Sequence record: NC_049849.1 | Direction: 5' to 3' (one strand) | Length of the DNA: 64,000 nt | Shown: in pieces, positions 16,982 through 50,864 of the stretch | How the letters are laid out: each line of letters opens with the position of its first letter | How positions within the stretch are numbered: position 1 is the stretch's first letter | Position numbers and translations under genes: made by a program | Notes under the pieces: model-generated | Seen by the model: only the letters and a program-made list of their open reading frames with translations | The model's database searches: none | What the model was told of the DNA's origin: nothing

Positions 16982-17428
16982 ATGGTCTGGCAATCTACCA
17001 AAACGTACGGTCATGAAGTTGGACTGAGCTGCGCATTCCGACAATGGCGCGCTCACTCGCATTGCCGTTTCGTTCATGGGTACGCACTGGCATTCAAGTT
17101 CGTCTTCGAGACTGAAGAGCTGGACAGCACGAACTGGGCAGTGGACTTCGGCGGCCTCAAGTCGTTGAAGCAAATGCTGCAAGACACGTTTGACCACAAG
17201 ACTGTTGTTGCCGAAGACGATCCCGAACTCGAATGGTTCAAGGAAGCAGAGAAGCGTGGCATCCTCGAACTGGTGGTACTGCCGCATGGTGGCTGCGAGA
17301 AGTTTGCAGAGTTCACGTATGAAGCCGCTGAGCAGTGGCTCAAGGATGCGGGCTTCAGTCCTCGTTGCCGACTGGTCTCTGTTGAAGTCTCCGAGCACGG
17401 CGCCAACTCCGCAATCTTCAAGCGTTAA
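16982..17428 (+). CDS. queD: 6-carboxy-5,6,7,8-tetrahydropterin synthase
   Basis: HSHCRFVHGY, VDFGGLK, FDHKT; T-fold size; Que cluster context. Confidence 0.9.
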   Translation: MVWQSTKTYGHEVGLSCAFRQWRAHSHCRFVHGYALAFKFVFETEELDSTNWAVDFGGLKSLKQMLQDTFDHKTVVAEDDPELEWFKEAEKRGILELVVLPHGGCEKFAEFTYEAAEQWLKDAGFSPRCRLVSVEVSEHGANSAIFKR

Positions 17429-17430
17429 TT

Positions 17431-18033
17431 ATGAAACCAATCATTCTTCTGTACGGTGGTGGCATCGACTCGACTACGCTACTGGCGCACCTGTCTAAGC
17501 ACCGTCGAGTATATGCAATGTTCTTTGCCTACGGTCAGAAGGCCGAAGCGTTGGAGCGCGAAGCCTGCAAGTATTTCTGCGAACGCTACCACGCTGAGTT
17601 CGTTGAAGTCAAGCTGCCCATTTCGGAACTCGCGGACTCCGCGATCCTGAACGGCGGTGCTCTGGCTGACAATCCCGCTATCAACATTGTTGATGGTCGC
17701 AACCTGACGTTCATTACCTTGGCTTCGATGTTCGCGGCCAAGGTAGACGTGACTGAGATTGCTGTAGGCTTCCATGTTGAGCCGGTAGCGCGCCCCTTCC
17801 CGGATGCGAGCCCCGAGTTCCTGGATGCAGTTAACACGATGCTGCCGCAAGCCTTCGTACACAAAGCTCAAGTCGTTGCTCCTTTCAAGGACATGACCCG
17901 CGCTGAAATCTTCCGATACGCGGATTCGATGGACTCAGAAATTCTGGCCCAAGCACATACGTGCTATGAAGACGTACCCGGTGGTTGCGGCAAGTGCAGC
18001 CACTGCCTAATCAAAGCAGAACTAACGGAGTAA
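17431..18033 (+). CDS. queC: 7-cyano-7-deazaguanine synthase
   Basis: PP-loop GGGIDS, FAYGQ, VDGRN, YPD-like FPDAS, zinc cluster TCY...CGKCSHC. Confidence 0.88.
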   Translation: MKPIILLYGGGIDSTTLLAHLSKHRRVYAMFFAYGQKAEALEREACKYFCERYHAEFVEVKLPISELADSAILNGGALADNPAINIVDGRNLTFITLASMFAAKVDVTEIAVGFHVEPVARPFPDASPEFLDAVNTMLPQAFVHKAQVVAPFKDMTRAEIFRYADSMDSEILAQAHTCYEDVPGGCGKCSHCLIKAELTE

Positions 18034-18036
18034 TCC

Positions 18037-19317
18037 ATGTGTGGCATCATCCTCGCAGCCGGTCCCAAGTATCTGTCCGGCGGATACATGAGCACTCAAC
18101 TGAGCCATCGTGGTCCTGACGCAGACACCGCAGGCGTGAACGGCAACGTATTCATTGCGCATCGTCGCTTGGCTATCGTTGACACTACATCGCTGAATGC
18201 TCAACAGCCACGATTTAAAGCGCAGCAGTACGCTTGCGTTTTCAACGGCGAGCTTTTCAACTACAAGAAACTGACGTGTGGTTCCGAGATTGAGCTGATT
18301 TCGGAACTGCTGTATGCTGGGCACGATCTGAGTCAGATACTCAATGGCTACTACGCCGTCGCCATGCACGATATCTCCCGCAATCGCATCACCCTGGCTC
18401 GCGATATCTTTGGCGTCATGCCTTTGTTCTATGCGAAGTACGAGGGTTCCTTCTTTGTCGCGTCTGAGCGCAAGGCAATGTATGCGCTGGTTCCCGAAGA
18501 CAAGATCAAGCCGGTGCCTGCTAACACTCGCATCGACTACTGCTTGAAGACTCGAAAGCTCACGTTCACCAAGTACACGCAGCCTTGGACGTTCAATCTG
18601 CCGGGCGTCATCTACGGCCCGTACGAAAGCCACACGGCTCAAGTCTTTCTCAATGCAGTGCGCGAAGTTGCACAGCATAGCGATAACGGATTCTCGGTTG
18701 CTCTATCCGGCGGCCTGGATTCGTCGTTGGTTCTGGCAGCGTGCCGTGGCTTGGGTCTGACGCCCACCGCGATTCTCACGACGTACATTGCAGAGACCGA
18801 AACCGAAGAAATGCGCAGCGCCAAGGCTCTGGTCAAGCACTTCAAGTGGGAGCATCTGCATAAGCTCATCAAACTCGAAGAGCCCGACTACGACCTGCGA
18901 CACTGGATCGAAACGCCGCCGAATCCGATTCGTGATTTTGCGTATCGTCGTCATGCTGCAGTTGCCAAGCACAGTCCGAGCAAAGTGATCCTGTGCGGTG
19001 AAGGTGCTGATGAGCTAGGCCTCGGCTATCCTCTAAATGGCGAGTTCAATACCCCGCTCGCACGATACATGAAGAAGGTTTCGCTGTTGAAGTCTCAAGC
19101 TACAATGACGCTCGATCGCGTTAACACGGCTGGTATGCAGTACTCGAAAGAATATCGCGTGCCGTTCCTACATATCCCATTTGTGCAGCACGCGTTGACT
19201 GTCGACCAAGTCGGCAAGACGCACTTCCGCAAGATGGCAACGTATCTTGGGATTCCTGACGGCATCCTACCGAATAACAAATACTCCGATGAAGAACGCA
19301 TCGGTCGAGCCCAATGA
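18037..19317 (+). CDS. asparagine synthetase B-like glutamine amidotransferase
   Basis: N-terminal Ntn nucleophile MCGI, HRGPD, HRRLAIVD, FNGELFN, ARDIFG; PP-loop SGGLDSS; GEGADEL. Confidence 0.85.
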   Translation: MCGIILAAGPKYLSGGYMSTQLSHRGPDADTAGVNGNVFIAHRRLAIVDTTSLNAQQPRFKAQQYACVFNGELFNYKKLTCGSEIELISELLYAGHDLSQILNGYYAVAMHDISRNRITLARDIFGVMPLFYAKYEGSFFVASERKAMYALVPEDKIKPVPANTRIDYCLKTRKLTFTKYTQPWTFNLPGVIYGPYESHTAQVFLNAVREVAQHSDNGFSVALSGGLDSSLVLAACRGLGLTPTAILTTYIAETETEEMRSAKALVKHFKWEHLHKLIKLEEPDYDLRHWIETPPNPIRDFAYRRHAAVAKHSPSKVILCGEGADELGLGYPLNGEFNTPLARYMKKVSLLKSQATMTLDRVNTAGMQYSKEYRVPFLHIPFVQHALTVDQVGKTHFRKMATYLGIPDGILPNNKYSDEERIGRAQ

Positions 19318-20735
19318 AAAACAAGAAACAAGTAGCGACTGTCGAGCATGTTGGCTACGACTTGATGCCCGCCGCTGTAGACTTCTTTGATACTTTTGAG
19401 AGTGTCGGAGTCAAGTACGGCAACAACAAGCAGAGCAAGTGGTGGACTCGCGATCTGCGCGATGGTGTCCATGTCTTCTATCTGCCGGATCGTACGCTCT
19501 ACCGTGGACGTGCCGGAGCGACTCAGTCGTGCATTGCCAGTGTTGAAGTCGATGAGTTCCTTGAGTACTCGTTGCTGAGCAATCCCGAGCTGTACTCTAG
19601 CTGGGGCCTGCGCTACGCAATGATTAGCCCGCCACATATGGGGTTCAAGCCGGCTCCGGTACGCAATCCGCATATCCGTTTGTTCGCGGACTCGGGTGGC
19701 TTCCAGATTCGCCAAGGCGTCACCGACTTCATTGATCCCAATACTCTGGTCGACTTCTACAACAAGACGACTGACATTGGTATCGGCCTTGACGTTCCTA
19801 TGCACCCGTTGCTGTATCCGAAGATGCTGCAGCGCATGGCGCATGTTACCTGCATGAACGGCGAGTACATCAAGAAGCAACTGAACCCTGGCGTCATGCT
19901 GTACGATCTGAACCACGGCATGGACTTGGTCGACCGCAAGGCTTTCCTCGACGTGACCGAAAAGTACGAGCCGCTCGATGGTATCTCGCTGGCTGGTACG
20001 TCGAGCAATGCGCGTGGTGAGTACGGCGTGTCTGCGCACATCGTTAACGGCGTGGTTGGTATCGCATATGTCCTGGCTCGTTCTGCCAAGCGTTATCGCA
20101 CGGCTCACATCCTGGGCACCACGACTCCGTTCTATATGTTCGTGTTCAACGTCATGACTCGCGGCAAGTTCTTTCCGCATATCACATCTGATAGTTCGAC
20201 GTACGCGCAAGCGGCAATCATGAATACGCACTTGATGGGCATCCCCGGCATCAACATGCTGCGACGGAATCCGATGCCGAAGACTGATCTGTCGACTCTG
20301 CCATGCAGCTGCCCTATCTGCCACATGACGAAGTACACGCAGTCGTACGTAATCAACAATCGGTCAAACATGATTCACAGCATCTGGTACTACGTTCAGA
20401 TGATGCGCTACACGGAGCACTTGGCTGACGAGTTCCTGGCAGGCCGTACCAAGGACTTGGAAATCCTGAAGGTGCTCGGACCCTCGACGTTTAGCCCTGT
20501 CCACATGAAGGGTACGATGCGATTCCTACGCGACCTGATCGAGCACGGCTACAACAAGGCTTATGCGAACAGCAAGGACTTCATTCACTCGATGCTGGGT
20601 AAGAAGACCACGACCAATCTCTTTGGTGGCGAGCGTTCGGCTGGAGTCTTACACGGTGATGCCGAACGTACGGACCGCATTCTCACCAGCTACGAAACGT
20701 ACCATAAGAAGACCGGAGTGAAGAAGCGCAAATGA
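19314..20735 (+). CDS. TGT/DpdA-family guanine transglycosylase
   Basis: ADSGGFQ, LDVP, HILG, SDSSTY (nucleophilic Asp), zinc site CSCPIC...H; lies inside the Que cluster. Confidence 0.8.
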   Translation: MKNKKQVATVEHVGYDLMPAAVDFFDTFESVGVKYGNNKQSKWWTRDLRDGVHVFYLPDRTLYRGRAGATQSCIASVEVDEFLEYSLLSNPELYSSWGLRYAMISPPHMGFKPAPVRNPHIRLFADSGGFQIRQGVTDFIDPNTLVDFYNKTTDIGIGLDVPMHPLLYPKMLQRMAHVTCMNGEYIKKQLNPGVMLYDLNHGMDLVDRKAFLDVTEKYEPLDGISLAGTSSNARGEYGVSAHIVNGVVGIAYVLARSAKRYRTAHILGTTTPFYMFVFNVMTRGKFFPHITSDSSTYAQAAIMNTHLMGIPGINMLRRNPMPKTDLSTLPCSCPICHMTKYTQSYVINNRSNMIHSIWYYVQMMRYTEHLADEFLAGRTKDLEILKVLGPSTFSPVHMKGTMRFLRDLIEHGYNKAYANSKDFIHSMLGKKTTTNLFGGERSAGVLHGDAERTDRILTSYETYHKKTGVKKRK

Positions 20736-21337
20736 AAGTAGAAATCAAAACGTTTGAAAACGTGTGGGGCTGCGCTGTATTCAACGCCGAGCTGCATCGG
20801 AAGATGAAGCATCATCATTTGGTGGTCGGCGTCGATACGCTATTCAGTTCCAAATACAAGCCGGTCAAAGGCAAGACCACAATCGTCATCGACAACTTTG
20901 CACGTCTGCGCAGTAGCGGCGTTCCTATCATCGGGTACGAAAAGTCTCCGACGCAGACCTGGGTGAAAGTTAAAGCTAGCTGGAAGAAGCCGAAGCCCAA
21001 CAAGCCCGAGATTAAGAAGCCGGTGTATCTGGCAGGCGAACTCAAGGTGCTGCTCCCTACGGTTCCGCTGATGCTCGAGTATCAAGCCGCCGTGACCTTG
21101 GAGCAGATGGAAGCTCTGGCCGAGAAGTACAGAGCTGAAATCGACAAGCCTAAGAAAGGCTCACACAAGTGGTTGCGTCGTTCGGTCAACAGCACGCTCA
21201 AGGTCCTGGCGCCTGAGAAGTATGACCCCAAGTTTAAAGAGAAGGCCGCAGCTGCTCCTAAGTCCAAGCTTGGTGCCAAGGCGAAGAAAGCGAAAGACGT
21301 AAATACAGAAGTCGCTAAGAGGAAGGGCAAGAAATGA
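20732..21337 (+). CDS. hypothetical Lys-rich protein within the Que cluster
   Basis: Coupled ATGA overlaps on both sides. Confidence 0.6.
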   Translation: MKVEIKTFENVWGCAVFNAELHRKMKHHHLVVGVDTLFSSKYKPVKGKTTIVIDNFARLRSSGVPIIGYEKSPTQTWVKVKASWKKPKPNKPEIKKPVYLAGELKVLLPTVPLMLEYQAAVTLEQMEALAEKYRAEIDKPKKGSHKWLRRSVNSTLKVLAPEKYDPKFKEKAAAAPKSKLGAKAKKAKDVNTEVAKRKGKK

Positions 21338-22182
21338 AAGACGTGATTGTCATTCAAAACGTCGACCGAGTAATTCGACCTAAGGACTATGAAACCCTCG
21401 GCGAGAAGATTCGAGTAACGTCGATCTTCCGTACGATTCAAGGCGAAGGTCCGTATACCGGATATCCTTCGGTCTTCGTTCGACTGTCGGGCTGCAACTT
21501 CGGTAACAAGGCAGAGGACTCCGCGTGCCGTTGGTGTGATACAGCCTTCCAGTTCGATCAAGGCTATGATTACACGGCAGAAGAACTCCTGGCTGCAGTG
21601 CAGAATCAGCCTGACTTCCACGCCTCTGACGTTGTAGTCATCACTGGTGGTGAGCCGACGCTGCAACACAATCTGCTGAAGTTCATGAAGCTGTGCCATG
21701 AGAACGACCTGTCTATGCAGATTGAGACCAACGGCACACAGCCCTCGTTCTACCAGCAGATAGAAGAGCTTGATGAAGAAGGAACCCTGCCTTATACTTT
21801 TGTAGCGAAGGGTACAGGTGTCTTGCACGTCGTGAGTCCCAAAGCGATTTACAAGGCCGGCAAGATTCCGCAACCTAGTCAGCATGTCCTGAAGGCTACC
21901 GCGTGTCTCAAGTTCGTCGTGTCATCTGATCCTGAGAGCCCGCATCACGAAGTGCCCGAGTGGTCGCGTAGTGCCCGCAACAAGTTCCGAAGCATACCCG
22001 TGTATGTTTCGCCCATGGCCGTTTACAAGCGAGCGTACGCTGGTGAAGTCTCATCCATTTGGGACCGAGACCTCATCGACCAAGAGCGCACGGCAGCTAA
22101 CTACGCGTATGCTGCACAGTACGCGATGGCTAATGGTTTCCTGCTATCACTCCAAACTCACTTGTTCACGTCGATACCATGA
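21334..22182 (+). CDS. queE: 7-carboxy-7-deazaguanine synthase (radical SAM)
   Basis: IFRTIQGEG, VFVRLSGC, CX10CX2C cluster motif, VITGGEP, IETNGT, SPK, LSLQTH. Confidence 0.9.
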   Translation: MKDVIVIQNVDRVIRPKDYETLGEKIRVTSIFRTIQGEGPYTGYPSVFVRLSGCNFGNKAEDSACRWCDTAFQFDQGYDYTAEELLAAVQNQPDFHASDVVVITGGEPTLQHNLLKFMKLCHENDLSMQIETNGTQPSFYQQIEELDEEGTLPYTFVAKGTGVLHVVSPKAIYKAGKIPQPSQHVLKATACLKFVVSSDPESPHHEVPEWSRSARNKFRSIPVYVSPMAVYKRAYAGEVSSIWDRDLIDQERTAANYAYAAQYAMANGFLLSLQTHLFTSIP

Positions 22183-22538
22183 ACAACCCCAATCCCTCCG
22201 TTGACGATATATTGTACCTTCTTCGTCGTGGCATCAACGGCGAGGTTGCCGTCACTTACAAAGACTACCCCTTATTCAAGGGACCGAGCCAGTTCATAAC
22301 GTACTTCGGTAACTGCACTGTCGTGTTTTTCGATGACGGCGGCGGATGCCTGAAGTATGTAGAGAGCGCAAGCGACGCGCACGGCAACGTCGCTGTGTAC
22401 TCCGATTGGCACAACGCTTGGCTCGAAGCTAACAAAGACGAAGAAGACGATTGGTTCCGCGATCCCATCGAACTGCTGAGCGACGCTGAATACATTGAAC
22501 TGCTGGACGTGCTCCAGCGCGCAACAAAGAAGGACTGA
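22179..22538 (+). CDS. hypothetical protein
   Basis: Coupled 119-aa ORF. Confidence 0.55.
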   Translation: MNNPNPSVDDILYLLRRGINGEVAVTYKDYPLFKGPSQFITYFGNCTVVFFDDGGGCLKYVESASDAHGNVAVYSDWHNAWLEANKDEEDDWFRDPIELLSDAEYIELLDVLQRATKKD

Positions 22539-22540
22539 AC

Positions 22541-23200
22541 ATGACTTACACTACCGATCACAAGACTGGCCTCGACGTTCGAGCACATCTGATTGAGCAA
22601 GGCGTAGAGACGCCGTTCACTCCGAAGAAGATTGACCAGACGCGCTTGCAAGTTCTGTTTGCAGAGCTGCACCGCGAGGTCGGTCTCGACTTGGCAGACG
22701 ATTCGATCGCTGAGACTCCGCGCCGCCTGGCCAAGCTGTACTCCACGCAAGAGTACTTCCGCGGTCTCGACTACGCGAACTTCCCGAAGGCCACGGTCGT
22801 GGACAACAAGATGGGCTACGACGAAATGGTGGTTGAGCGCAACATCATCGTCAACAGCCTTTGTGAGCATCACTGGCTGCCCATCATTGGCGGCGCTTTC
22901 GTCGCGTACATTCCCGAGAAGAAAGTCATCGGTCTGTCGAAGCTCAATCGCCTCGTTGACTTCTTCTGCCGACGCCCGCAGATTCAAGAGCGCCTGGTAG
23001 AGCAAATCTATCACGCTCTGTCGTTCCTGCTGGAGACTAAGAACGTCGCAGTCGTGATTGAAGCAGAGCATATGTGCGTCAAGACGCGTGGCGTTGAAGA
23101 TGCGTGCTCTGACACCGTGACTTCGAAGCTCGGCGGCAAGTTCCGCGATCCCGCTCTGCGTGCTGAGTTCCTTACTCTTGCCAAAGGACTGCGTGGATGA
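22541..23200 (+). CDS. folE: GTP cyclohydrolase I
   Basis: ETPRRLAK, SLCEHHWLP, VIGLSKLNR, RRPQIQERL, EAEHMC. Confidence 0.95.
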   Translation: MTYTTDHKTGLDVRAHLIEQGVETPFTPKKIDQTRLQVLFAELHREVGLDLADDSIAETPRRLAKLYSTQEYFRGLDYANFPKATVVDNKMGYDEMVVERNIIVNSLCEHHWLPIIGGAFVAYIPEKKVIGLSKLNRLVDFFCRRPQIQERLVEQIYHALSFLLETKNVAVVIEAEHMCVKTRGVEDACSDTVTSKLGGKFRDPALRAEFLTLAKGLRG

Positions 23201-24290: not shown

Positions 24291-25253
24291 ATGGCTAAGT
24301 ATCAGCACTCCGAAACATTCAGGGCACTGAAGTCTACCAAGGAAGAAATCGAAGGCAATCTCACCAGTGCACAGTATCTACAGACGCTGGACTACTTTCT
24401 GTGGAGTGCGCTGAATCCCATCGCGGCGGAGTGTCCTGATTTCTTCTACTCGATGATCGCCAAGTTCGTGAGTCTGCAAACGACGAAACCGAATACGAAG
24501 TTCACGAGTGGGGACAAGAAGCAGCTGCCGCTCATCTTGTTCAATGCCTTGATAAACAAGAACGCAGAGAAGCGATTCGAGTCTATTAAAAAGATGTATT
24601 GGAATCGCGGGCTACTCTTTGGTCTGATCCTGACCTTTCAGAAGCTGACCAACGAGTACCAAGCTCTGCACTCAGTCTTCAACGATGTTGACTTGACCAC
24701 TCGAGTCAATCGTATGCGTCAGATTGAGAAATCAGTCGGCGCGAAGAACCCAGCGTATCTCTACGCAACGATTCAGCAAGTGGCCTACTGGGACTCGAAG
24801 GCTCGCTGGTTCAAGTCGTTGATCGTACAGAAGTTCACGCGTATGGCGATGCTGCAAGCACAGCAGACCTACAAGGACTTCGACCACAAGGTTCCGCTGG
24901 ATGATGTATCACACGTCTACATGATGGTAGTCAACAAAGCCATTGATCGCTGTAACTCCAACATGGGAGTGATCACGACCTTTGTTCAGAATTGGTTGCC
25001 TACGGCTCGAGCAATCGTGCAGCAGATGGCATCCAAGTCTACCGATGAGTCATGGGACGAGCTGGCAGAAACCCTGGGTGACAGTTTAGAGCTCGGTGCT
25101 ACAATGCCGAACACTGACTCTGAAACCCTGCAGCAAATCTCTTACCTCGCACGACTGGCCGATCCACAAGGCTTGGTGCGTACCCACTTGCAAATCCCTC
25201 AATGGGTAGCGGCCAAATACCGCGCCCGCCTTCTCAATCTTGCTAAAGAGTAA
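24291..25253 (+). CDS. divergent sigma70-family factor (RpoD-like non-conserved region + region 2, no region 4)
   Basis: RMRQIEKSVG...KARWFKSLIVQKFTRMAMLQA...LDDV...NKAIDR...MGVITTFVQNWL aligns by eye with RpoD KLQQIEEETG...KARRAKKEMVEANLRLVISIA...LDLI...MKAVDKF...GYKFSTYATWWI. Confidence 0.6.
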   Translation: MAKYQHSETFRALKSTKEEIEGNLTSAQYLQTLDYFLWSALNPIAAECPDFFYSMIAKFVSLQTTKPNTKFTSGDKKQLPLILFNALINKNAEKRFESIKKMYWNRGLLFGLILTFQKLTNEYQALHSVFNDVDLTTRVNRMRQIEKSVGAKNPAYLYATIQQVAYWDSKARWFKSLIVQKFTRMAMLQAQQTYKDFDHKVPLDDVSHVYMMVVNKAIDRCNSNMGVITTFVQNWLPTARAIVQQMASKSTDESWDELAETLGDSLELGATMPNTDSETLQQISYLARLADPQGLVRTHLQIPQWVAAKYRARLLNLAKE

Positions 25254-25254
25254 A

Positions 25255-25983
25255 ATGAAAAACATTCGTGAACTGTTGGCCCTGCAGTACGCTACCAATG
25301 ACAAGCTGGCCCCTGGCTGGCTCGAACGCTCGGACGTGGACTTCTATTCCGCGATCCGCGATGAAGCAGGTGAACTAGCTGTCTCCGCAGGTTGGAAGCC
25401 GTGGTGGTCGAAGGCTGAGTCGAAGCTGGACCGCGACAACTGCAAGGTCGAAGTCGTTGACCTGCTGCACTTCCATATGTCGGCAGTGCTGCGTGAATGC
25501 TTCGAGCAGGAAGGCGACGAGCTGGAAGACCTGAGCGATGAAGCGCTGAAGCGTGAACTCATCGAGTCGGCCGCCGACAATTTCGAGTACGCCAACTACT
25601 CGAGCATCAACCCGGATCGTACGGACGTTCAGGCTGTCAATGACTACCTGGGTGACGTGCTGTGCATGGGCGCTATCTCTTCGGTCCCTCAGTTGATGGC
25701 TCTGGCTGAACGCTTTGGCATGATTGAGGCTGAGTTCGGTCTGCGCTACATCGCAAAGAATGCACTCAACAACTTCCGCAAGGCTCACAACTACAAGGGC
25801 GATATCGAAGGCATGCCTGCGTATCGCAAGATGTGGTTCGACGGCCAACAGGAAGACAACTACTACGTGACCGCGTATCTGAACAAGCAAGTCGAGAACG
25901 GTAAGACTCCGACCTATCAGCAGTTCTATGACGCAATGGAAGCCATGTATGTCGGAAATTACGACCCTACTCAATTTGCTTGA
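25255..25983 (+). CDS. dimeric (all-alpha) dUTPase
   Basis: AIRDEAGEL, WKPWW, VEVVDLLHF, YIAKNALNNFR. Confidence 0.8.
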   Translation: MKNIRELLALQYATNDKLAPGWLERSDVDFYSAIRDEAGELAVSAGWKPWWSKAESKLDRDNCKVEVVDLLHFHMSAVLRECFEQEGDELEDLSDEALKRELIESAADNFEYANYSSINPDRTDVQAVNDYLGDVLCMGAISSVPQLMALAERFGMIEAEFGLRYIAKNALNNFRKAHNYKGDIEGMPAYRKMWFDGQQEDNYYVTAYLNKQVENGKTPTYQQFYDAMEAMYVGNYDPTQFA

Positions 25984-26269
25984 TCGGCAAGTCAACACTG
26001 ACTACGTTGAAGGCCTTGAGCGCGCAGTCCAGACCAGCGATGCAATCAGGGCTGCTGTAGCCGACGGCTTAGACGTTGCGCAAGTCATGACTCAACACCT
26101 CGCGCGGCACACGCAGCACAAGGCGCAGAGTCTGCAAGCTGTTATTGAGACAACCCTGCTTGCACTCCAAGCACTGCAGGGTCTTGATGACTCGAATCAG
26201 AAAATCGTAAATAAGATCGTCGATGCACTAACGACTTCTATTGGTGCATCCAAACTGAGGAATAACTAA
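25949..26269 (+). CDS. hypothetical protein
   Basis: Helical 106-aa ORF; start refined. Confidence 0.5.
   Translation: MSEITTLLNLLDRQVNTDYVEGLERAVQTSDAIRAAVADGLDVAQVMTQHLARHTQHKAQSLQAVIETTLLALQALQGLDDSNQKIVNKIVDALTTSIGASKLRNN
26205..26213 (+). promoter_or_regulatory. TCGTAAATA motif upstream of the SSB gene
   Basis: Exact motif about 57 nt before ATG 26270. Confidence 0.55.
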
Positions 26270-27784
26270 ATGGCAAAGCAGAAAGGTACTGACCTCGACG
26301 GTTACAAGTCGGGCCGCAGCAATGACGACCGCAAGCGTCCTGAAGATATCGTTGACGTACTGAAGGTACCCGACAACGGTGACAAGTGGACCACGGTTCG
26401 TATGATTGGCATCCTCGCCACGTACGCTGGCTACTGGGTCACGACGACGAAGAAGGACGGCAAGGAAGGCACGTTCTACACGCCCAGCCCTTCGTACGAT
26501 CCCGAGTCGCAAGAGTTCGACCGTTCCAAGTATGACCCGTGGCTCGACGCAGCGGATCGTTTGAACACGCAAGATCGCCGAGTCATCAGCCCGCGCCGTG
26601 TGGCATACTCGAACGTCATTGTGCGCGCTGAGCAAAAGAAGGCGCCGAAGAAGAAGCCGAAGCCGACCAAGGCCGAGTTGAAGTCGGGCTTCAAGGATAA
26701 GGAATCGGAAACCTGGACGCCGGTCCGCGTTATGGCGTTCCCTTCGTCGTTGATGAACAAGATCATCAAGTTCAAGAACGCCAACATGGTCGAGACCAAG
26801 AAAGGCGAGAAGGGCTACCATGTCAACGATCCGAAGTACGGCTGCGATATCCGTATCTCCTACGACTCGAAGGCTTCCGGTACTGACAAGTACTCGGTGT
26901 TGATGGCTGATCGCAAGCCCATCACCGAAGAAGAATCCGAATACCTGCTGTACGATATCTCCGAACTGCAAACGGTGCCGGACGAAGCAGAGGTGAAGCG
27001 CGACTTCGAATCGTGGGCCAAGCGTAACGGCATCAAGCTCGGCAAGAACAAGTCGAAGGATGATGACGACGAAGAAGACGATATCGACGAGGACGAAGAC
27101 GACCTCGATGATGACGACGAGCCGAAGTCGAAAAAGAAGGGCAAGGGCAAGGGCAAGGCCGACAAGAAGTCGAAGGGCAAGAAGAAGTCCAAGTCTGATG
27201 ACGACGAAGACGAAGACGAGGATGAAGATGACCTCGACGACGAAGACGACGAAGACGAGGATGACGACGAACCCAAGTCGAAAAAGAAGGGTAAAGGCAA
27301 GCCCGCCAAGTCCAAGAAGTCGAAGGATGATGATGATGACGACGAAGACGAGGATGAAGATGAAGATGAAGATGACGACGATGATTCGGATGACGATGAT
27401 GAGGATGACTCTGACTCGGATGATGAAGACGATGACGACGATGACTCGGATGATGACGAGGACGATGATGAAGATGAGGATGACGACGACGAGCCCAAGT
27501 CGAAGAAGTCCAAGTCTAAGTCGAAAGGTAAACCCGCCAAGGGTAAGAAGAAGTCCAAGTCTGATGATGATGACGAAGACGATGATGACCTAGACGACGA
27601 TGACTCCGATGATGAGGACGAAGACGACGACGAAGATGAGGACGATGAGCCCAAGTCGAAGAAGTCGAAGAAAGCCAAGTCGAAGAGTAAGGAAAAGTCC
27701 AGCAAGAAGGGCAAGAAGTCGAAGGGTAAGAAGAAGTCCAAGTCGGATGATGACGAAGACGAAGACGACGACATTCCTTTCTAA
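26270..27784 (+). CDS. single-stranded DNA-binding protein (T4 gp32-like core) with long charge-block tail ending DDDIPF
   Basis: Core motifs TTVRMIG, YSNVIVR, VMAFPSSLMNKI, NDPKYGCDI resemble gp32; the C-terminal DDDIPF is identical to the bacterial SSB tip; gene lies upstream of recA. Confidence 0.7.
   Translation: MAKQKGTDLDGYKSGRSNDDRKRPEDIVDVLKVPDNGDKWTTVRMIGILATYAGYWVTTTKKDGKEGTFYTPSPSYDPESQEFDRSKYDPWLDAADRLNTQDRRVISPRRVAYSNVIVRAEQKKAPKKKPKPTKAELKSGFKDKESETWTPVRVMAFPSSLMNKIIKFKNANMVETKKGEKGYHVNDPKYGCDIRISYDSKASGTDKYSVLMADRKPITEEESEYLLYDISELQTVPDEAEVKRDFESWAKRNGIKLGKNKSKDDDDEEDDIDEDEDDLDDDDEPKSKKKGKGKGKADKKSKGKKKSKSDDDEDEDEDEDDLDDEDDEDEDDDEPKSKKKGKGKPAKSKKSKDDDDDDEDEDEDEDEDDDDDSDDDDEDDSDSDDEDDDDDDSDDDEDDDEDEDDDDEPKSKKSKSKSKGKPAKGKKKSKSDDDDEDDDDLDDDDSDDEDEDDDEDEDDEPKSKKSKKAKSKSKEKSSKKGKKSKGKKKSKSDDDEDEDDDIPF
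27050..27781 (+). repeat. intragenic low-complexity repeat: alternating Asp/Glu and EPKSKK-led Lys blocks
   Basis: Four GA(G/A)CC(C/G)AAGTCGAA(A/G)AAG units separated by GAY/GAR runs. Confidence 0.85.
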
Positions 27785-27809
27785 GCAGTCGTAGGTAATC
27801 CATAACTCG

Positions 27810-27851
27810 AGGGAGCCCCTTTACTCAAGGGCGCTCCCTTCGTTCGTTTTC
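27810..27851 (+). terminator. rho-independent terminator
   Basis: AGGGAGC-CCCTT / AAGGG-C-GCTCCCT stem followed by a T-rich tail. Confidence 0.6.
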
Positions 27852-27865
27852 AGGAAAATTTTTGC

Positions 27866-29467
27866 ATGGCAAAGAAAGAGAAAGACGCAAAAGCAAAGAA
27901 GACCAAGGTCAAGGCTGACGACAAGGAACTGAAGAAAGCCAAGAAGGCGGTCAAGGCTGTGATTGACGACGCTGAGAAGAAAACCAAGAAAGCCCTGAAG
28001 GCTGCAAAGGCAAAGAAGTCGAAGTCGCGGTCCGATGATGACGAAGTAGATGACGACGGCGACGAAGCTTCTGGTGAAGCGGGGTTCGATCCCTACGCGC
28101 ATATGAACTCCGACCTGGATGAAATCGAACGCCAGGTACAAGTTACATCGGGTCTCGAAGAAGACGCATTCCCCATGTCCACGGGTCTGCTGATGAAAGA
28201 CTTGATGCTGGGTGGTGGCATTCGCCCCGGCATGTACACGACTGCAGGTGGCGAGCAATCGACCAAGACCACTTCGGTTATCAACGACTTCGCGGCTGCT
28301 ACCCTCGCTGGTGTGCCGATCAAGTCGTGGTGGGACTACGAAGGTTCGACGGTCAACAGCCATCCGTACGTTGAGTCGATCATGCGAGCCAACGGCATCA
28401 AGAAAACGGCGCGTGATTTGTTTGGTGTGCGTGACTCTGCTACTGGCAAGTACATCGTCACTCCGATTATCCGTTTCCAAACGGAGTCGATTCTCGAAAA
28501 GTTCTTTGACTACTTTCACGGTATGCTCAAGCGTCTGCCGAACAAGCGACTGCTGGCGGGCAAGTGGTGGTACATCTATGAGGACTCGAAAGAGAACCAG
28601 AAGAAGTACGGCGAGTTCGCTTCAAAGAAGATGCCCAAGATGTACGGCAAGGGCATCTACATTCCTGTACCGAACGACGATGGGTCGCTGCAAGCTGTGG
28701 TCGGCGTTGACTCGTATCCGGCAATGAATCCTCTGCTGAACGATGAGGACGAGGCCAACGAAGGTCTGGCTCTGAATGCCCGTCGATTCTCCAAGCTGCT
28801 GCCCCGCGTGAAGGGCCTGCTGGTACAAAAGCGCGTGGCACTCCTCGGCGTGAATCAGTTGCGTGATATCCCGATGGCTCGATACGGTCCGACTCAGATG
28901 GAACCCGGCGGCAAGGCTTTGCAGTTCAACTCGGACGTGCGCCTCTGGAATTCCAGCCGTGCCCTGTCTGGTGTGCCGTACGGCAATCCGAAGGGTGAAG
29001 GCAAATTTGAGTTTGAAGATTCGATCACCGGCGAAGGCAAAGATCGCTACCGCTACATTCATCAGAAGATGGTGAAGAATAAGCTGAGTCAGGAAATCCC
29101 CGAAGTGTGGTATCGCCTGTGGGTCGAAGACGTGAACGGCGAAGCGCAGGGGTATGACCCGGTGTGGGATACGATCTACTACTTGTTTGTCACGGGTCAG
29201 GTCTCGGGTAAGCGTCATGCCATGACGTTGAACTTGGAGAAGCTCGGCGCAGCCAAGAAGTCTACGAGCTGGAAGGAACTCAAGCTGTGGGTTCTCGGTA
29301 GCAAGGACGACAAGAAAAAGATCAGTGAGCGCTTGGGCTACAAGCCAATGGACCTTCGCAAGTTCTGCTTCTCGCAGATGAAGAAGGGCACGAGCAAGGA
29401 GTTGTACTTTGCCCAACAAAATAAAAACGCGAAAAACAAGGATTCATCCGACGATTCGGAAGACTGA
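27866..29467 (+). CDS. recA: RecA/UvsX-like recombinase with Lys-rich N-terminal extension
   Basis: STGLLMKDLMLGGGIRPG, variant P-loop GEQSTKTT, VGVDSYPAM, GVNQLR, PGGKALQFNSDVRL. Confidence 0.85.
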   Translation: MAKKEKDAKAKKTKVKADDKELKKAKKAVKAVIDDAEKKTKKALKAAKAKKSKSRSDDDEVDDDGDEASGEAGFDPYAHMNSDLDEIERQVQVTSGLEEDAFPMSTGLLMKDLMLGGGIRPGMYTTAGGEQSTKTTSVINDFAAATLAGVPIKSWWDYEGSTVNSHPYVESIMRANGIKKTARDLFGVRDSATGKYIVTPIIRFQTESILEKFFDYFHGMLKRLPNKRLLAGKWWYIYEDSKENQKKYGEFASKKMPKMYGKGIYIPVPNDDGSLQAVVGVDSYPAMNPLLNDEDEANEGLALNARRFSKLLPRVKGLLVQKRVALLGVNQLRDIPMARYGPTQMEPGGKALQFNSDVRLWNSSRALSGVPYGNPKGEGKFEFEDSITGEGKDRYRYIHQKMVKNKLSQEIPEVWYRLWVEDVNGEAQGYDPVWDTIYYLFVTGQVSGKRHAMTLNLEKLGAAKKSTSWKELKLWVLGSKDDKKKISERLGYKPMDLRKFCFSQMKKGTSKELYFAQQNKNAKNKDSSDDSED

Positions 29468-44445: not shown

Positions 44446-44515
44446 CATGGACAAGCGATGACCGTGAGCTTTGAATCGGTCGCATCATCCCAAACCTATA
44501 GGACAGAAACACATC

Positions 44516-45403
44516 ATGGCAAAGAACGCAAAGGCAGCAGGCAAGAAGGCGGCTGGTAAGAAGGCCGCTGGCAAGAAGCAAGTCGAGAAGAAGGTCACGA
44601 AGGCTGCTGGCAAGAAGGGCCCGGCCCCCAAGAAGCAAGCTGCGAAGAAGACGGTTGCCAAGAAGACCGTAGCCAAGAAGACGGCAGCGAAGACCCCGAA
44701 GGCTGCCAAGGCTCCACGTGGTGCGAAGGGTGGCAAGCAAGCTGTGGCAGCGTCGCAAGTTCAAGTCAACAACGGCATGCTGATGGTTCAGGTCGTCAAG
44801 AGCATCGTTGGCGACAAGATCAAGGTCACGGCCGAGTACTTCGAAGTCGACGGCGTGAAGATTCCGCGCGCTCTGGTCATCGCAGTTGCCGGCAAGGAAG
44901 TGATCTATCGCGCTTCGATCAACCTGGGCACGATTCAAGACGCCAAGACGATCAAGGGCAATCTGGTCTACACGACTGAACTGGGTCAGGTCATGATTCT
45001 GGATTCGTCGGTCGCTTCCATCGTGATCGGCAACGGTGCAGCCGCCGGTGGTGAAGCCGAAGTCGAAGAGTCGGACAGCGAAGAGTCGGATACCGAAGAC
45101 GGTGACGACGAGTCGGACAGCGACGATGAAGACGAAGCTGATTCGGATGATGAAGATTCGGACGAAGACGACGAAGACTCGGATGACGAGGACTCCGACG
45201 AAGACGACGAAGATTCTGATGATGAAGATTCGGACGAAGACTCCGATGACGAGGACGACGAAGACTCGGACGAGGATGATGAGGATTCCGACGACGAAGA
45301 CGAAGACTCCGACGACGAAGACTCGGATGATGAAGACGACGAAGACGACGAAGATTCGGACGATGACGAAGAAGACTTCGACGACGAAGATGACGACGAG
45401 TAA
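44516..45403 (+). CDS. polyampholyte protein: histone-like K/A N-terminus, small beta core, ~100-aa Asp/Glu/Ser tail
   Basis: AKAAGKKAAGKK..., then DSDDEDSDEDDE repeats; start refined to 44516. Confidence 0.8.
   Translation: MAKNAKAAGKKAAGKKAAGKKQVEKKVTKAAGKKGPAPKKQAAKKTVAKKTVAKKTAAKTPKAAKAPRGAKGGKQAVAASQVQVNNGMLMVQVVKSIVGDKIKVTAEYFEVDGVKIPRALVIAVAGKEVIYRASINLGTIQDAKTIKGNLVYTTELGQVMILDSSVASIVIGNGAAAGGEAEVEESDSEESDTEDGDDESDSDDEDEADSDDEDSDEDDEDSDDEDSDEDDEDSDDEDSDEDSDDEDDEDSDEDDEDSDDEDEDSDDEDSDDEDDEDDEDSDDDEEDFDDEDDDE
45060..45400 (+). repeat. intragenic acidic tandem repeats (DSDDE/DSDEDDE)
   Basis: Recurrent GA(T/C)TC(G/C)GA(T/C)GA(T/C)GAA units. Confidence 0.85.
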
Positions 45404-50273: not shown

Positions 50274-50402
50274 TCCTGTATAATCGTCATGCGCAGTTTG
50301 CGACATTTTGAAACGCAAATTCCGCATGGCACAATTTCATTTCGTTCAATCGAACGAATCTATCCCGCGAATCATTCGCACCTTCCCTCTAGGAAAAATA
50401 AA

Positions 50403-50864
50403 ATGTCGAACATCGTTAAGCAAGTCGCCGAAGTCACGAAAGCTGCCAAGGCTCTGGAAAAGCAACTGAAGGCCGCTACCAAGCGCGCCGACAAGGCTGA
50501 GAAGACTGTCGAGAAGCTGGAAGCAAAGCTCGAAGGCAAGAGCGGCAAGGCTGCGAAGAAGACCAAGGCCGAAAAGCCCGCGAAGGCTGCCAAGGTCAAG
50601 AAGGAAAAGGCCGAGAAGCCCGCCAAGGCCAAGAAGGAAAAGGCTGGCAAGGCTGAGAAGGTTGCCAAGAAGGAAAAGGTCGCCAAGGTCAAGAAGGCTG
50701 ACAAGGCCGCGAAGCCTGCGAAGGGTGACAAGAAGGCCAAGGCTGACAAGGCCGGTAAGGCTGAGAAGGCGAACAAGAAGGCCGACAAGGCAGCCAAGGC
50801 TGGCAAGAAGGAAAAGAAGTCCAAGAAGAACGATGATGACGACTCGTTCACGCTGGGCAACTAA
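50403..50864 (+). CDS. histone H1-like Lys/Ala-rich protein with N-terminal coiled coil
   Basis: Repeated EKPAKA/KAGKAEK units; AGGAAAA RBS; start refined. Confidence 0.75.
   Translation: MSNIVKQVAEVTKAAKALEKQLKAATKRADKAEKTVEKLEAKLEGKSGKAAKKTKAEKPAKAAKVKKEKAEKPAKAKKEKAGKAEKVAKKEKVAKVKKADKAAKPAKGDKKAKADKAGKAEKANKKADKAAKAGKKEKKSKKNDDDDSFTLGN

Follow-up and report, generated by a model that had tools for sequence, protein, structure and literature searches.

The window analysed here is a whole stretch of 64,000 nucleotides, positions 1-64000 in the genome of Achromobacter phage Motura (MN094788 / NC_049849). This jumbo phage has 221,431 bp, and its isolation host is Achromobacter animicus. Our subject is the gene at 26270..27784 on the + strand, gp037, which encodes a single-stranded DNA (ssDNA) binding protein (SSB) of 504 residues; in the open reading frame (ORF) list it runs from an ATG start to the C-terminal sequence ...DDDIPF and a TAA stop. 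The ORF is 100% identical to 26270-27784 of MN094788/NC_049849, where the record annotation is ssDNA binding protein, and the gene was already known and annotated as an SSB in both GenBank and RefSeq. A preliminary description, made from the sequence of the window, had taken the protein for a chimeric gp32-like SSB with a block-charged tail and a host-type tip. We find that it is one member of a large family of gp32-like SSBs from jumbo phages, a minority of whose lineages cap the tail with the bacterial SSB tip.

The protein begins with a short N-terminal peptide, residues 1-18 (26270..26323), which is predicted to be disordered by a predicted local distance difference test (pLDDT) below 50 and in which M1 and D10 are conserved in the family. 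It is followed by a core at residues 19-258 (26324..27043), assigned to a gp32-like oligonucleotide/oligosaccharide-binding (OB) fold without zinc ligands from the AlphaFold2 (AF2) model, Foldseek and the family alignment. Residues 259-504 (27044..27781) form a polyampholyte tail, delimited by the block map, shuffles and pLDDT, and the last six of them (aa 499-504, 27764..27781) are the DDDIPF tip, which in the ORF translation is identical to the bacterial SSB C-terminal (SSB-Ct) hexapeptide. All of these features lie on the + strand.

The five acidic and four Lys blocks of the tail, the EPKSKK that leads each Lys block and the DDDIPF end are exactly as had been read from the translation. The block map opens with a short Lys segment (aa 256-263) and continues with acidic block 1 (aa 264-285, 27059..27124, 22 residues, net -19), Lys block 1 (aa 286-308, 27125..27193, 23 residues, net +13), acidic block 2 (aa 309-335, 27194..27274, 27 residues, net -24), Lys block 2 (aa 336-352, 27275..27325, 17 residues, net +10), acidic block 3 (aa 353-409, 27326..27496, 57 residues, net -52), Lys block 3 (aa 410-430, 27497..27559, 21 residues, net +12), acidic block 4 (aa 431-461, 27560..27652, 31 residues, net -27), Lys block 4 (aa 462-491, 27653..27742, 30 residues, net +17) and acidic block 5 (aa 492-504, 27743..27781, 13 residues, net -9), which includes the tip. 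All four Lys blocks have EP just before them, start with KSKK and end in ...KKSK, after which the next Asp run follows at once or after one Ser.

The 246 residues of the tail comprise 100 Asp, 33 Glu, 57 Lys and no Arg, for a net charge of -76; 75% of the residues are charged and the net charge is -0.29 per residue. Opposite charges are strongly segregated, with a Das-Pappu-type delta (5-residue blobs) of 0.415, z = 18.5 against 200 shuffles of the same tail. In the full-length AlphaFold2 model residues 261-504 have a pLDDT of 43-51 and no secondary structure, and the tail is accordingly predicted to be disordered. It therefore combines the predicted disorder, high charged fraction and strong segregation of opposite charges of a blocky polyampholyte, and it also has the character of an acidic C-terminal domain of the gp32 type, though ~5x longer and broken up by Lys blocks.

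At the DNA level the blocks appear to be an old, degenerate tandem duplication with a period of ~138-150 nt. Tandem Repeats Finder (TRF) reports a repeat at 27065..27381 (+) with period 150, 2.1 copies and 74% matches, and a family of direct repeats with a spacing of 138 nt has copies that are 60-74% identical. The best-conserved copy, 27702..27771 (+), covers the Lys-to-acid junction of the last unit and is 89% identical to that of the first unit at 27153-27222; judging by this identity, the pair is fresher than the remaining copies. Two ORFs that overlap the gene, an antisense poly-Ser/Asp/Phe/Leu frame of 304 aa (26860-27774, -) and a Met/Thr/Arg/Lys-rich frame of 177 aa (27060-27593, +, +2 frame), were rejected as genes and taken for mirror artefacts of the GAY/AAG repeats, because the annotated SSB frame is the one conserved across all relatives.

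The core was modeled by AlphaFold2 from 27 homologs with good confidence (mean pLDDT 86.5, predicted TM-score 0.80), residues ~19-258 being folded and mostly above pLDDT 90. A Foldseek search of the PDB with this model gave four significant matches, all of them gp32 cores (RB69 2a1k chains A and B, T4 1gpc, and the gp32-Dda complex 8gme), with E values of 3.3e-6 to 1.6e-5 and probability 1.0, and the fifth match (E 0.06) was four orders of magnitude worse. Among viral models (BFVD), members of the family came first, followed by annotated phage SSBs including that of the T4-like Acinetobacter phage ZZ1. In Pfam neither the Motura SSB nor 27 relatives had a match at E up to 0.1 or 1, and the Motura core in particular did not match PF00436. 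With the Motura SSB and the family profile, no NCBIfam match was obtained and no gp32 chain in the PDB was found by phmmer or profile hmmsearch; the profile picked up only tails of similar composition (TFIIF, eIF3c, nucleoplasmin, nucleophosmin), which are not homologs. Only PHROG 15004 ('single strand DNA binding protein') names the core by sequence (E 2.8e-61, Motura residues 3-365 aligned with positions 2-386 of a 421-position profile). The term gp32-like, which had been proposed for the protein, holds by fold and not by sequence match, because the confident model matches only gp32 cores in the PDB, and on the strength of this model we regard the Motura core as a very divergent gp32-type OB fold. 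The Foldseek result agrees with the placement of Motura by Iyer et al. (2021) in jumbo-phage subgroup 2.2, a group whose SSBs are OB-fold gp32 orthologs (PMC7824862).

By two features that define the gp32 family, profile membership and zinc ligands, the Motura protein falls outside it. One aligned segment of the core keeps a zinc-like C..CxxC(+H) motif in the PaBG, Dickeya JA11 and P0035-P0041 clades, a set of residues reminiscent of the gp32 zinc site. There is no Cys or His in the aligned Motura segment, and phiRSL1 and BcepSauron likewise have no Cys in theirs. From this alignment the zinc ligands appear to have been lost in Motura's clade, and the Cys/His set apparently retained in other clades serves as an internal check that supports kinship with gp32. 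The core (residues 1-258) is basic, with a net charge of +7 and pI 9.1, and R44, W56, K62, R119, K142 and Y208 are invariant or near-invariant across the family. By analogy with gp32, we infer that the core binds ssDNA, and residues 1-18 may have a role akin to that of the gp32 N-terminal cooperativity segment.

To delineate the family, an exhaustive phmmer search was run with the core alone as the query and the matches were clustered at 50% identity. This gave 461 clusters, 339 of them with E <= 1e-10, and tail and tip classes were scored on the representatives of the best 150 of the 461. A charged tail is present in 119 of the 150 representatives, with at least four blocks in 106 of the 119 (median 10 blocks); detected tails range from ~33 to ~280 aa in length. 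Charge segregation is high (z = 4.5-24) in all 48 members tested. Alternating acid and Lys blocks were seen in all homologs read, namely phiRSL1 ORF222, BcepSauron gp242, BCSR5, Vibrio GR11A, Dickeya JA11, PaBG, Lu11, Yoloswag, pEa_SNUABM_5, NCTB, Rhizobium RHph_N46, Yersinia fHe-Yen9-02 and Alcaligenes Afa-NA1; the weakest tail, with one acid-to-base transition only, is that of Pseudomonas phage Voja-6. Pro occupies 74% of 675 acid-to-base junctions ('DDEP-K', 'DDKP-K', 'DDLP-R') versus 32% of base-to-acid junctions, which suggests that the repeat unit has a polarity conserved across the family.

Repeat number was compared across relatives, as had been proposed as a check. Three proteins whose cores are 100% identical have 3, 4 and 5 Lys blocks, with tails 131, 166 and 201 aa long, and end in the same tip; block number thus appears to change very fast, by rapid gain and loss of whole units. 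Taken together, the sequences suggest descent of the alternating acid/base tail within a family that numbers at least 461 clusters, and we regard this tail as a hallmark of the large jumbo-phage gp32-like SSB family (PHROG 15004; Iyer's group 2.2). The idea of a chimera specific to Motura is not borne out, since the tail is common to the family and IPF ends occur in ~10% of representatives from scattered lineages. In literature searches on this subject we found no description of the tail architecture or of its distribution.

Several database records of family members deserve a remark. The coding sequence of the homolog from Xanthomonas phage PhiXhv-16 departs from the poly-Asp frame and has Met/Thr and poly-Met stretches at its end, which looks like one apparent frameshift or assembly error within a GAY repeat; such tails may be error-prone in assemblies. 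The homolog of Rhizobium phage RHph_N46 carries the annotation 'Nop14-like family protein', in all likelihood a mis-annotation by composition to which the charged tail gave rise. Two records, those of Alcaligenes phage Afa-NA1 (78 kb) and Salmonella phage Sen-NF (108 kb), are far below jumbo size and have different stated hosts, and their tblastn statistics for the SSB are identical (28.3% identity, E 9e-15); these records may be partial or related assemblies.

The C-terminal tip of bacterial SSBs is an established interaction motif (PMC5872125, PMC7584906), and the preliminary description had recognized DDDIPF as this motif. A scan of bacterial genomes for DDDIPF followed by a stop in high-GC codons (pattern with ATC CCS) gave at least 120 matches, and the ORFs among the matches listed are mostly 140-200 aa long, with Pro/Ala/Gln-rich linkers before '...DDDIPF'. 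All six sampled, from Massilia, a Comamonadaceae, a Burkholderiales metagenome-assembled genome (MAG), a beta-proteobacterial MAG, a Pseudomonas and a Yersinia, are PF00436 SSBs (E 1e-34 to 1e-42), three of them from Burkholderiales, which bears out the recognition of the motif. An end fragment from Pelistega, a member of the Alcaligenaceae, the family of the host, also closes with DDDIPF. We call the Motura tip host-type because DDDIPF-stop ORFs in Burkholderiales are canonical PF00436 SSBs, a comparison of sequences based on the three sampled Burkholderiales SSBs and the one Pelistega fragment and not on Achromobacter itself; the host's own SSB would be expected to end in DDDIPF. The IPF codons of the Motura tip are ATT CCT TTC, outside the ATC CCS of the scan pattern, and therefore do not indicate that a host 3' end was captured recently.

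IPF ends were found in 15 of the 150 representatives (13 tailed proteins plus P0089 and P0120), to be compared with an expectation of ~0.02 (150/8000) for a random C-terminal tripeptide, so the IPF tip is most probably not a product of chance. The remaining classes are Lys/Arg-rich ends (39/150), plain acidic ends (33/150) and acid plus a terminal hydrophobic residue (29/150 by the rule applied here, including a few xPF and IPY ends). Further xPF ends in the family are VPF, MPF, SPF and EPF, and xPF tips overall number 20 of 172. The IPF tip was not seen in Motura's nearest neighbours, and the IPF-tipped P0036/P0037 group falls in the zinc-retaining PaBG-like clade. A tree of tips required 16 changes for the 20 xPF tips versus a permuted mean of 19.3 and minimum of 16, i.e. 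weak clustering; the tree is a crude one (average linkage with Fitch counting), has no support values and does not allow gains and losses to be counted. The distribution suggests that the IPF tip is evolutionarily labile and is present in at least two well-separated lineages. Among the homologs read, Motura is the only cultured phage with a known host that carries it.

The genes around the SSB are all on the + strand. Upstream are a phage sigma-like factor (24291..25253; PHROG 17569, E 6e-56), which by synteny is the upstream neighbour of the SSB throughout the family, a dimeric-dUTPase/MazG-like protein (25255-25983) and a small helical ORF, gp036 (25949..26269), whose stop abuts the SSB start codon. 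The latter has no family match in Pfam, PHROG or NCBIfam; it is weakly similar to BcepSauron gp241 (E 4e-5), which occupies the same position and is its positional ortholog, and has no clear similarity to phiRSL1 ORF223. Downstream, a consensus scan and RNA folding identified a G+C-rich hairpin followed by a T-run at 27808..27850 (-25.5 kcal/mol, z = -2.8), terminator-like in form and possibly a terminator or attenuator that divides the SSB from the next gene. This gene is a RecA/UvsX-like recombinase (27866..29467; PF00154 and PHROG 97), and the large terminase lies 3' of it.

The sigma-like factor and the RecA/UvsX-like gene flank the SSB in Motura, as is characteristic of the family, and also in RSL1, Sauron, GR11A, JA11, PaBG, L007, Afa-NA1, Lu11, Voja-6, Yoloswag, SNUABM_5, PhiXhv-16 and Yen9-02. 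In NCTB and RHph_N46, as annotated, only the recombinase side of this arrangement is visible. In all fetched relatives with enough flanking sequence to include the next gene, the recombinase lies beside the SSB; in two cases (GR11A and Voja-6) one further ORF separates them. Just upstream of the replication genes is an annotated 7-deazaguanine cluster (16982-23200, +) of QueD, QueC, amidotransferase-like, tRNA-guanine-transglycosylase-like, QueE and GTP cyclohydrolase genes; Motura is named by Iyer et al. for a deazaguanine DNA modification system (PMC7824862).

How might such a protein work? The mechanism proposed here starts from what is given above on the class of fold, the disorder and charge pattern, the identity of the tip, synteny and the distribution in the family, and it is extended from them by analogy with the behaviour of gp32 and bacterial SSBs. 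On balance we lean, if only slightly, towards a replication and recombination SSB in which the basic core sits on ssDNA, the tail acts as a multivalent electrostatic hub, and DDDIPF docks to host or host-like pockets. The core, with its net charge of +7, would coat ssDNA, and the tail would be an expanded version of the acidic C-domain of gp32. In the free protein, the acidic blocks could bind both the Lys blocks and the core's DNA cleft, giving autoinhibition; the C-domain of gp32 folds back on its core (PMC5892887) and the tip of E. coli SSB binds its own OB fold (PMC7584906). Binding of ssDNA would then release the tail as the hub.

The acidic blocks might bind Lys-rich extensions, for example the one on the RecA-like recombinase encoded next to the SSB, a protein that we consider a likely electrostatic client of the SSB tail. 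The Motura recombinase has a Lys/Ala-rich N-extension (aa 1-55, with 24 K+R and 8 D+E), then a short acidic run, and an acidic C-terminus. Such a Lys-rich extension was present in 7 of 7 recombinases read (Motura and the relatives L001, L002, L004, L005, L006 and L007), reaching more than 90 aa of Lys blocks in metagenomic contig L007, and an acidic C-end was found in all read except phiRSL1. The terminal DDDIPF, for its part, would dock to SSB-Ct pockets, either those of the host's genome-maintenance enzymes or those of a phage protein that imitates them; the bacterial peptide binds at least 18 partners (PMC7584906), and by this analogy recruitment of host partners is plausible. Multivalency would concentrate the recruited factors on phage ssDNA, possibly up to a condensate. 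E. coli SSB phase-separates in vitro, driven by its disordered tail and by contacts between tip and core (PMC7584906), and T4 gp32 and UvsX form condensates or droplets in vitro (PMC11951158), so that condensate formation is plausible by analogy; it is the least supported step. The window encodes two further charge-segregated proteins (ORFs 44471-45403 and 50289-50864), which we count in favour of the mechanism.

Several observations weigh against this mechanism. The TM-scores of the gp32 matches in Foldseek are moderate (0.40-0.59, normalised to the target), and Pfam, NCBIfam, phmmer and the family profile against the PDB provide no sequence-level link between the core and gp32. No Achromobacter record is among the at least 120 DDDIPF-stop matches listed. 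All other cultured relatives read, including an Alcaligenes phage, are without the IPF tip. The copy-number polymorphism on identical cores implies that tail length is loosely constrained. Finally, the tail's net charge lies well away from zero. This makes self-coacervation less likely unless polycations or basic partners take part, and condensation would therefore need them.

The absence of the tip from cultured relatives means that docking to host proteins is not a requirement of the family. The hosts of these relatives probably have SSBs ending in IPF too. In the best surviving of the alternatives, the acidic end with its last aromatic or aliphatic residue (IPF, DF, DL) would recruit not host proteins but one of the phage itself, be it recombinase, polymerase or helicase, as do gp32, T7 gp2.5 and HK620 SSB; the match to the host tip would then reflect convergence on a ligand of acid plus a C-terminal hydrophobe. 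Besides the missing IPF in cultured relatives, this reading draws on the ~24 further representatives, beyond the 15 with IPF, that end in acid and a terminal F, L, Y or W, on the position of the SSB just upstream of the RecA-like gene in all relatives whose flank reached it, and on precedents in the gp32-Dda complex (PDB 8gme) and in HK620, whose SSB tip brings in Sak4, the neighbouring recombinase (PMC5928155). However, the last six residues of the Motura protein are identical, more than similar, to the PF00436 tip, and several IPF members also match the upstream hydrophobic position of bacterial tips (...DFDDDIPF, ...DMDDDIPF). Such close similarity points to mimicry of the bacterial ligand, and we consider service to a phage partner unlikely, if still a serious candidate.

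Slippage in the GAY/AAG repeats could also have produced the tail as a mainly neutral or weakly selected low-complexity expansion, at most an acidic bristle that keeps the protein soluble or autoinhibited and forms neither hub nor condensate. The tandem repeats are degenerate at the DNA level, units number 3, 4 or 5 on identical cores, detected tails vary from ~33 to ~280 aa, and tip classes vary freely, basic ends included, as such an origin would have it. Neutral expansion is difficult to reconcile, however, with alternation kept in 106 of the 119 tailed representatives, at a median of 10 blocks, when cores are only 30-50% identical. It also fits poorly with the conserved Pro-marked polarity of the junctions, with the near-exclusive use of Lys in the Motura tail (Lys:Arg = 57:0), and with old repeats of 60-74% identity that have kept their pattern instead of decaying. 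We give this explanation little credence.

Tail and tip together might instead be a decoy or DNA mimic that titrates host SSB-interacting enzymes or DNA-binding defence proteins, given that the tip is identical to the host-type tip and that the poly-D/E tracts of 22-57 residues resemble DNA-mimic surfaces. Phage SSBs are reported to be toxic to E. coli (PMC13687109), but the neighbours (sigma-like factor, dUTPase-like protein, recombinase and terminase) offer no defence or anti-defence context, a mimic leaves the Lys blocks unexplained, and the tail is family-wide and the tip is not, so that a decoy seems very improbable. A role in nucleus import or in a shell was set aside, since sigma factors and a T4-type capsid are what defines group 2.2, in contrast to the PhiKZ-type group 1 (PMC7824862).

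The hub mechanism may be carried one step further, with the SSB tail, the Lys extension of the recombinase and other charge-segregated phage proteins forming a charge-coded, membrane-less replication and recombination compartment in group-2.2 jumbo phages. Phages of this group are not known to build a protein-shelled nucleus. The number of blocks would tune the properties of such a compartment, and the tip, which varies between IPF, acid plus F/L, plain acidic and basic forms, would select the host or phage enzymes admitted to it, with polyamines made by the phage as possible counter-ions. [quoted passage not shown]

The two other charge-segregated proteins of the window are of different make. 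The ORF at 44471-45403 (+), of ~300 aa, opens with ~90 aa of Lys/Ala repeats of the 'KKAAGKK' type, continues with a ~100-aa middle domain and closes with an Asp/Glu/Ser tail of ~110 aa; it is strongly charge-segregated and has no PHROG match. The ORF at 50289-50864 (+) encodes a Lys/Ala/Glu-rich, histone-H1-like low-complexity protein (phrog_38087) with a short acidic patch at its end.

SSB tails are switchboards of DNA replication and repair, and here a family of at least 461 clusters appears to have replaced the short acidic tail of gp32 with a long, regularly alternating polyampholyte of acid and lysine. Cores that are identical but bear 3, 4 or 5 blocks, together with tips of four classes, among them exact copies of the bacterial SSB docking peptide, offer a natural series for the study of charge blocks in a bacterial cytoplasm. 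If the tail organises replication factories, it would be a counterpart, in a virus of prokaryotes, of the nucleolar type of charge-block condensate, and jumbo phages would have a second route, beside the phage nucleus, to compartmentalise replication. If it does not, the family still shows that the host SSB tip has been mimicked repeatedly on an SSB fold that is not bacterial.

Among known systems, the closest is gp32 of T4 and RB69 (1gpc, 2a1k, 8gme), whose OB-fold core is the sole significant fold match in the PDB. The two share a three-part layout, with a core set between a short N-terminal segment and an acidic C-terminal domain, as well as a role class, that of a phage replication and recombination SSB adjoining a gene of the RecA/UvsX type. 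The Motura core, however, is only 14-16% identical to gp32 and is without zinc ligands. The acidic tail of gp32 has roughly 50 aa, and that of Motura has 246 aa, four Lys blocks and the bacterial tip. With bacterial SSBs (PF00436) from the sampled Burkholderiales, Pseudomonas and Yersinia, Motura shares the last six residues, which in both close a disordered tail. Its core is not PF00436, and its linker is a charged polyampholyte, whereas the sampled bacterial linkers are rich in Pro, Gln, Gly and Ala.

The prophage DUF669 SSBs are similar in that a non-bacterial SSB fold has a host-type DDDIPF cap, which on these non-canonical proteins has been read as mimicry to plug into host DNA metabolism (PMC13687109). 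They differ from the Motura protein in their fold family, in their temperate setting and in having no block-charged tail. In other phage systems, with which T7 gp2.5 and its acidic tail are grouped as well as HK620, tip or tail recruits the phage's own proteins. The SSB of HK620 recruits the adjacent phage recombinase, Sak4, through its acidic C-terminal hexapeptide (PMC5928155), but this tip is similar and not identical to the bacterial motif, and it closes a short tail without charge blocks. Condensate-forming SSBs, i.e. E. coli SSB and T4 gp32 with UvsX, resemble the Motura protein as a disordered tail and tip, or as a phage SSB, that forms droplets in vitro; the linker of E. coli SSB is uncharged, however, and the Motura tail is strongly net-negative. 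The blocky acid/Lys disordered regions of the eukaryotic proteins TFIIF, eIF3c, nucleoplasmin and nucleophosmin are like the Motura tail in composition and not by homology.

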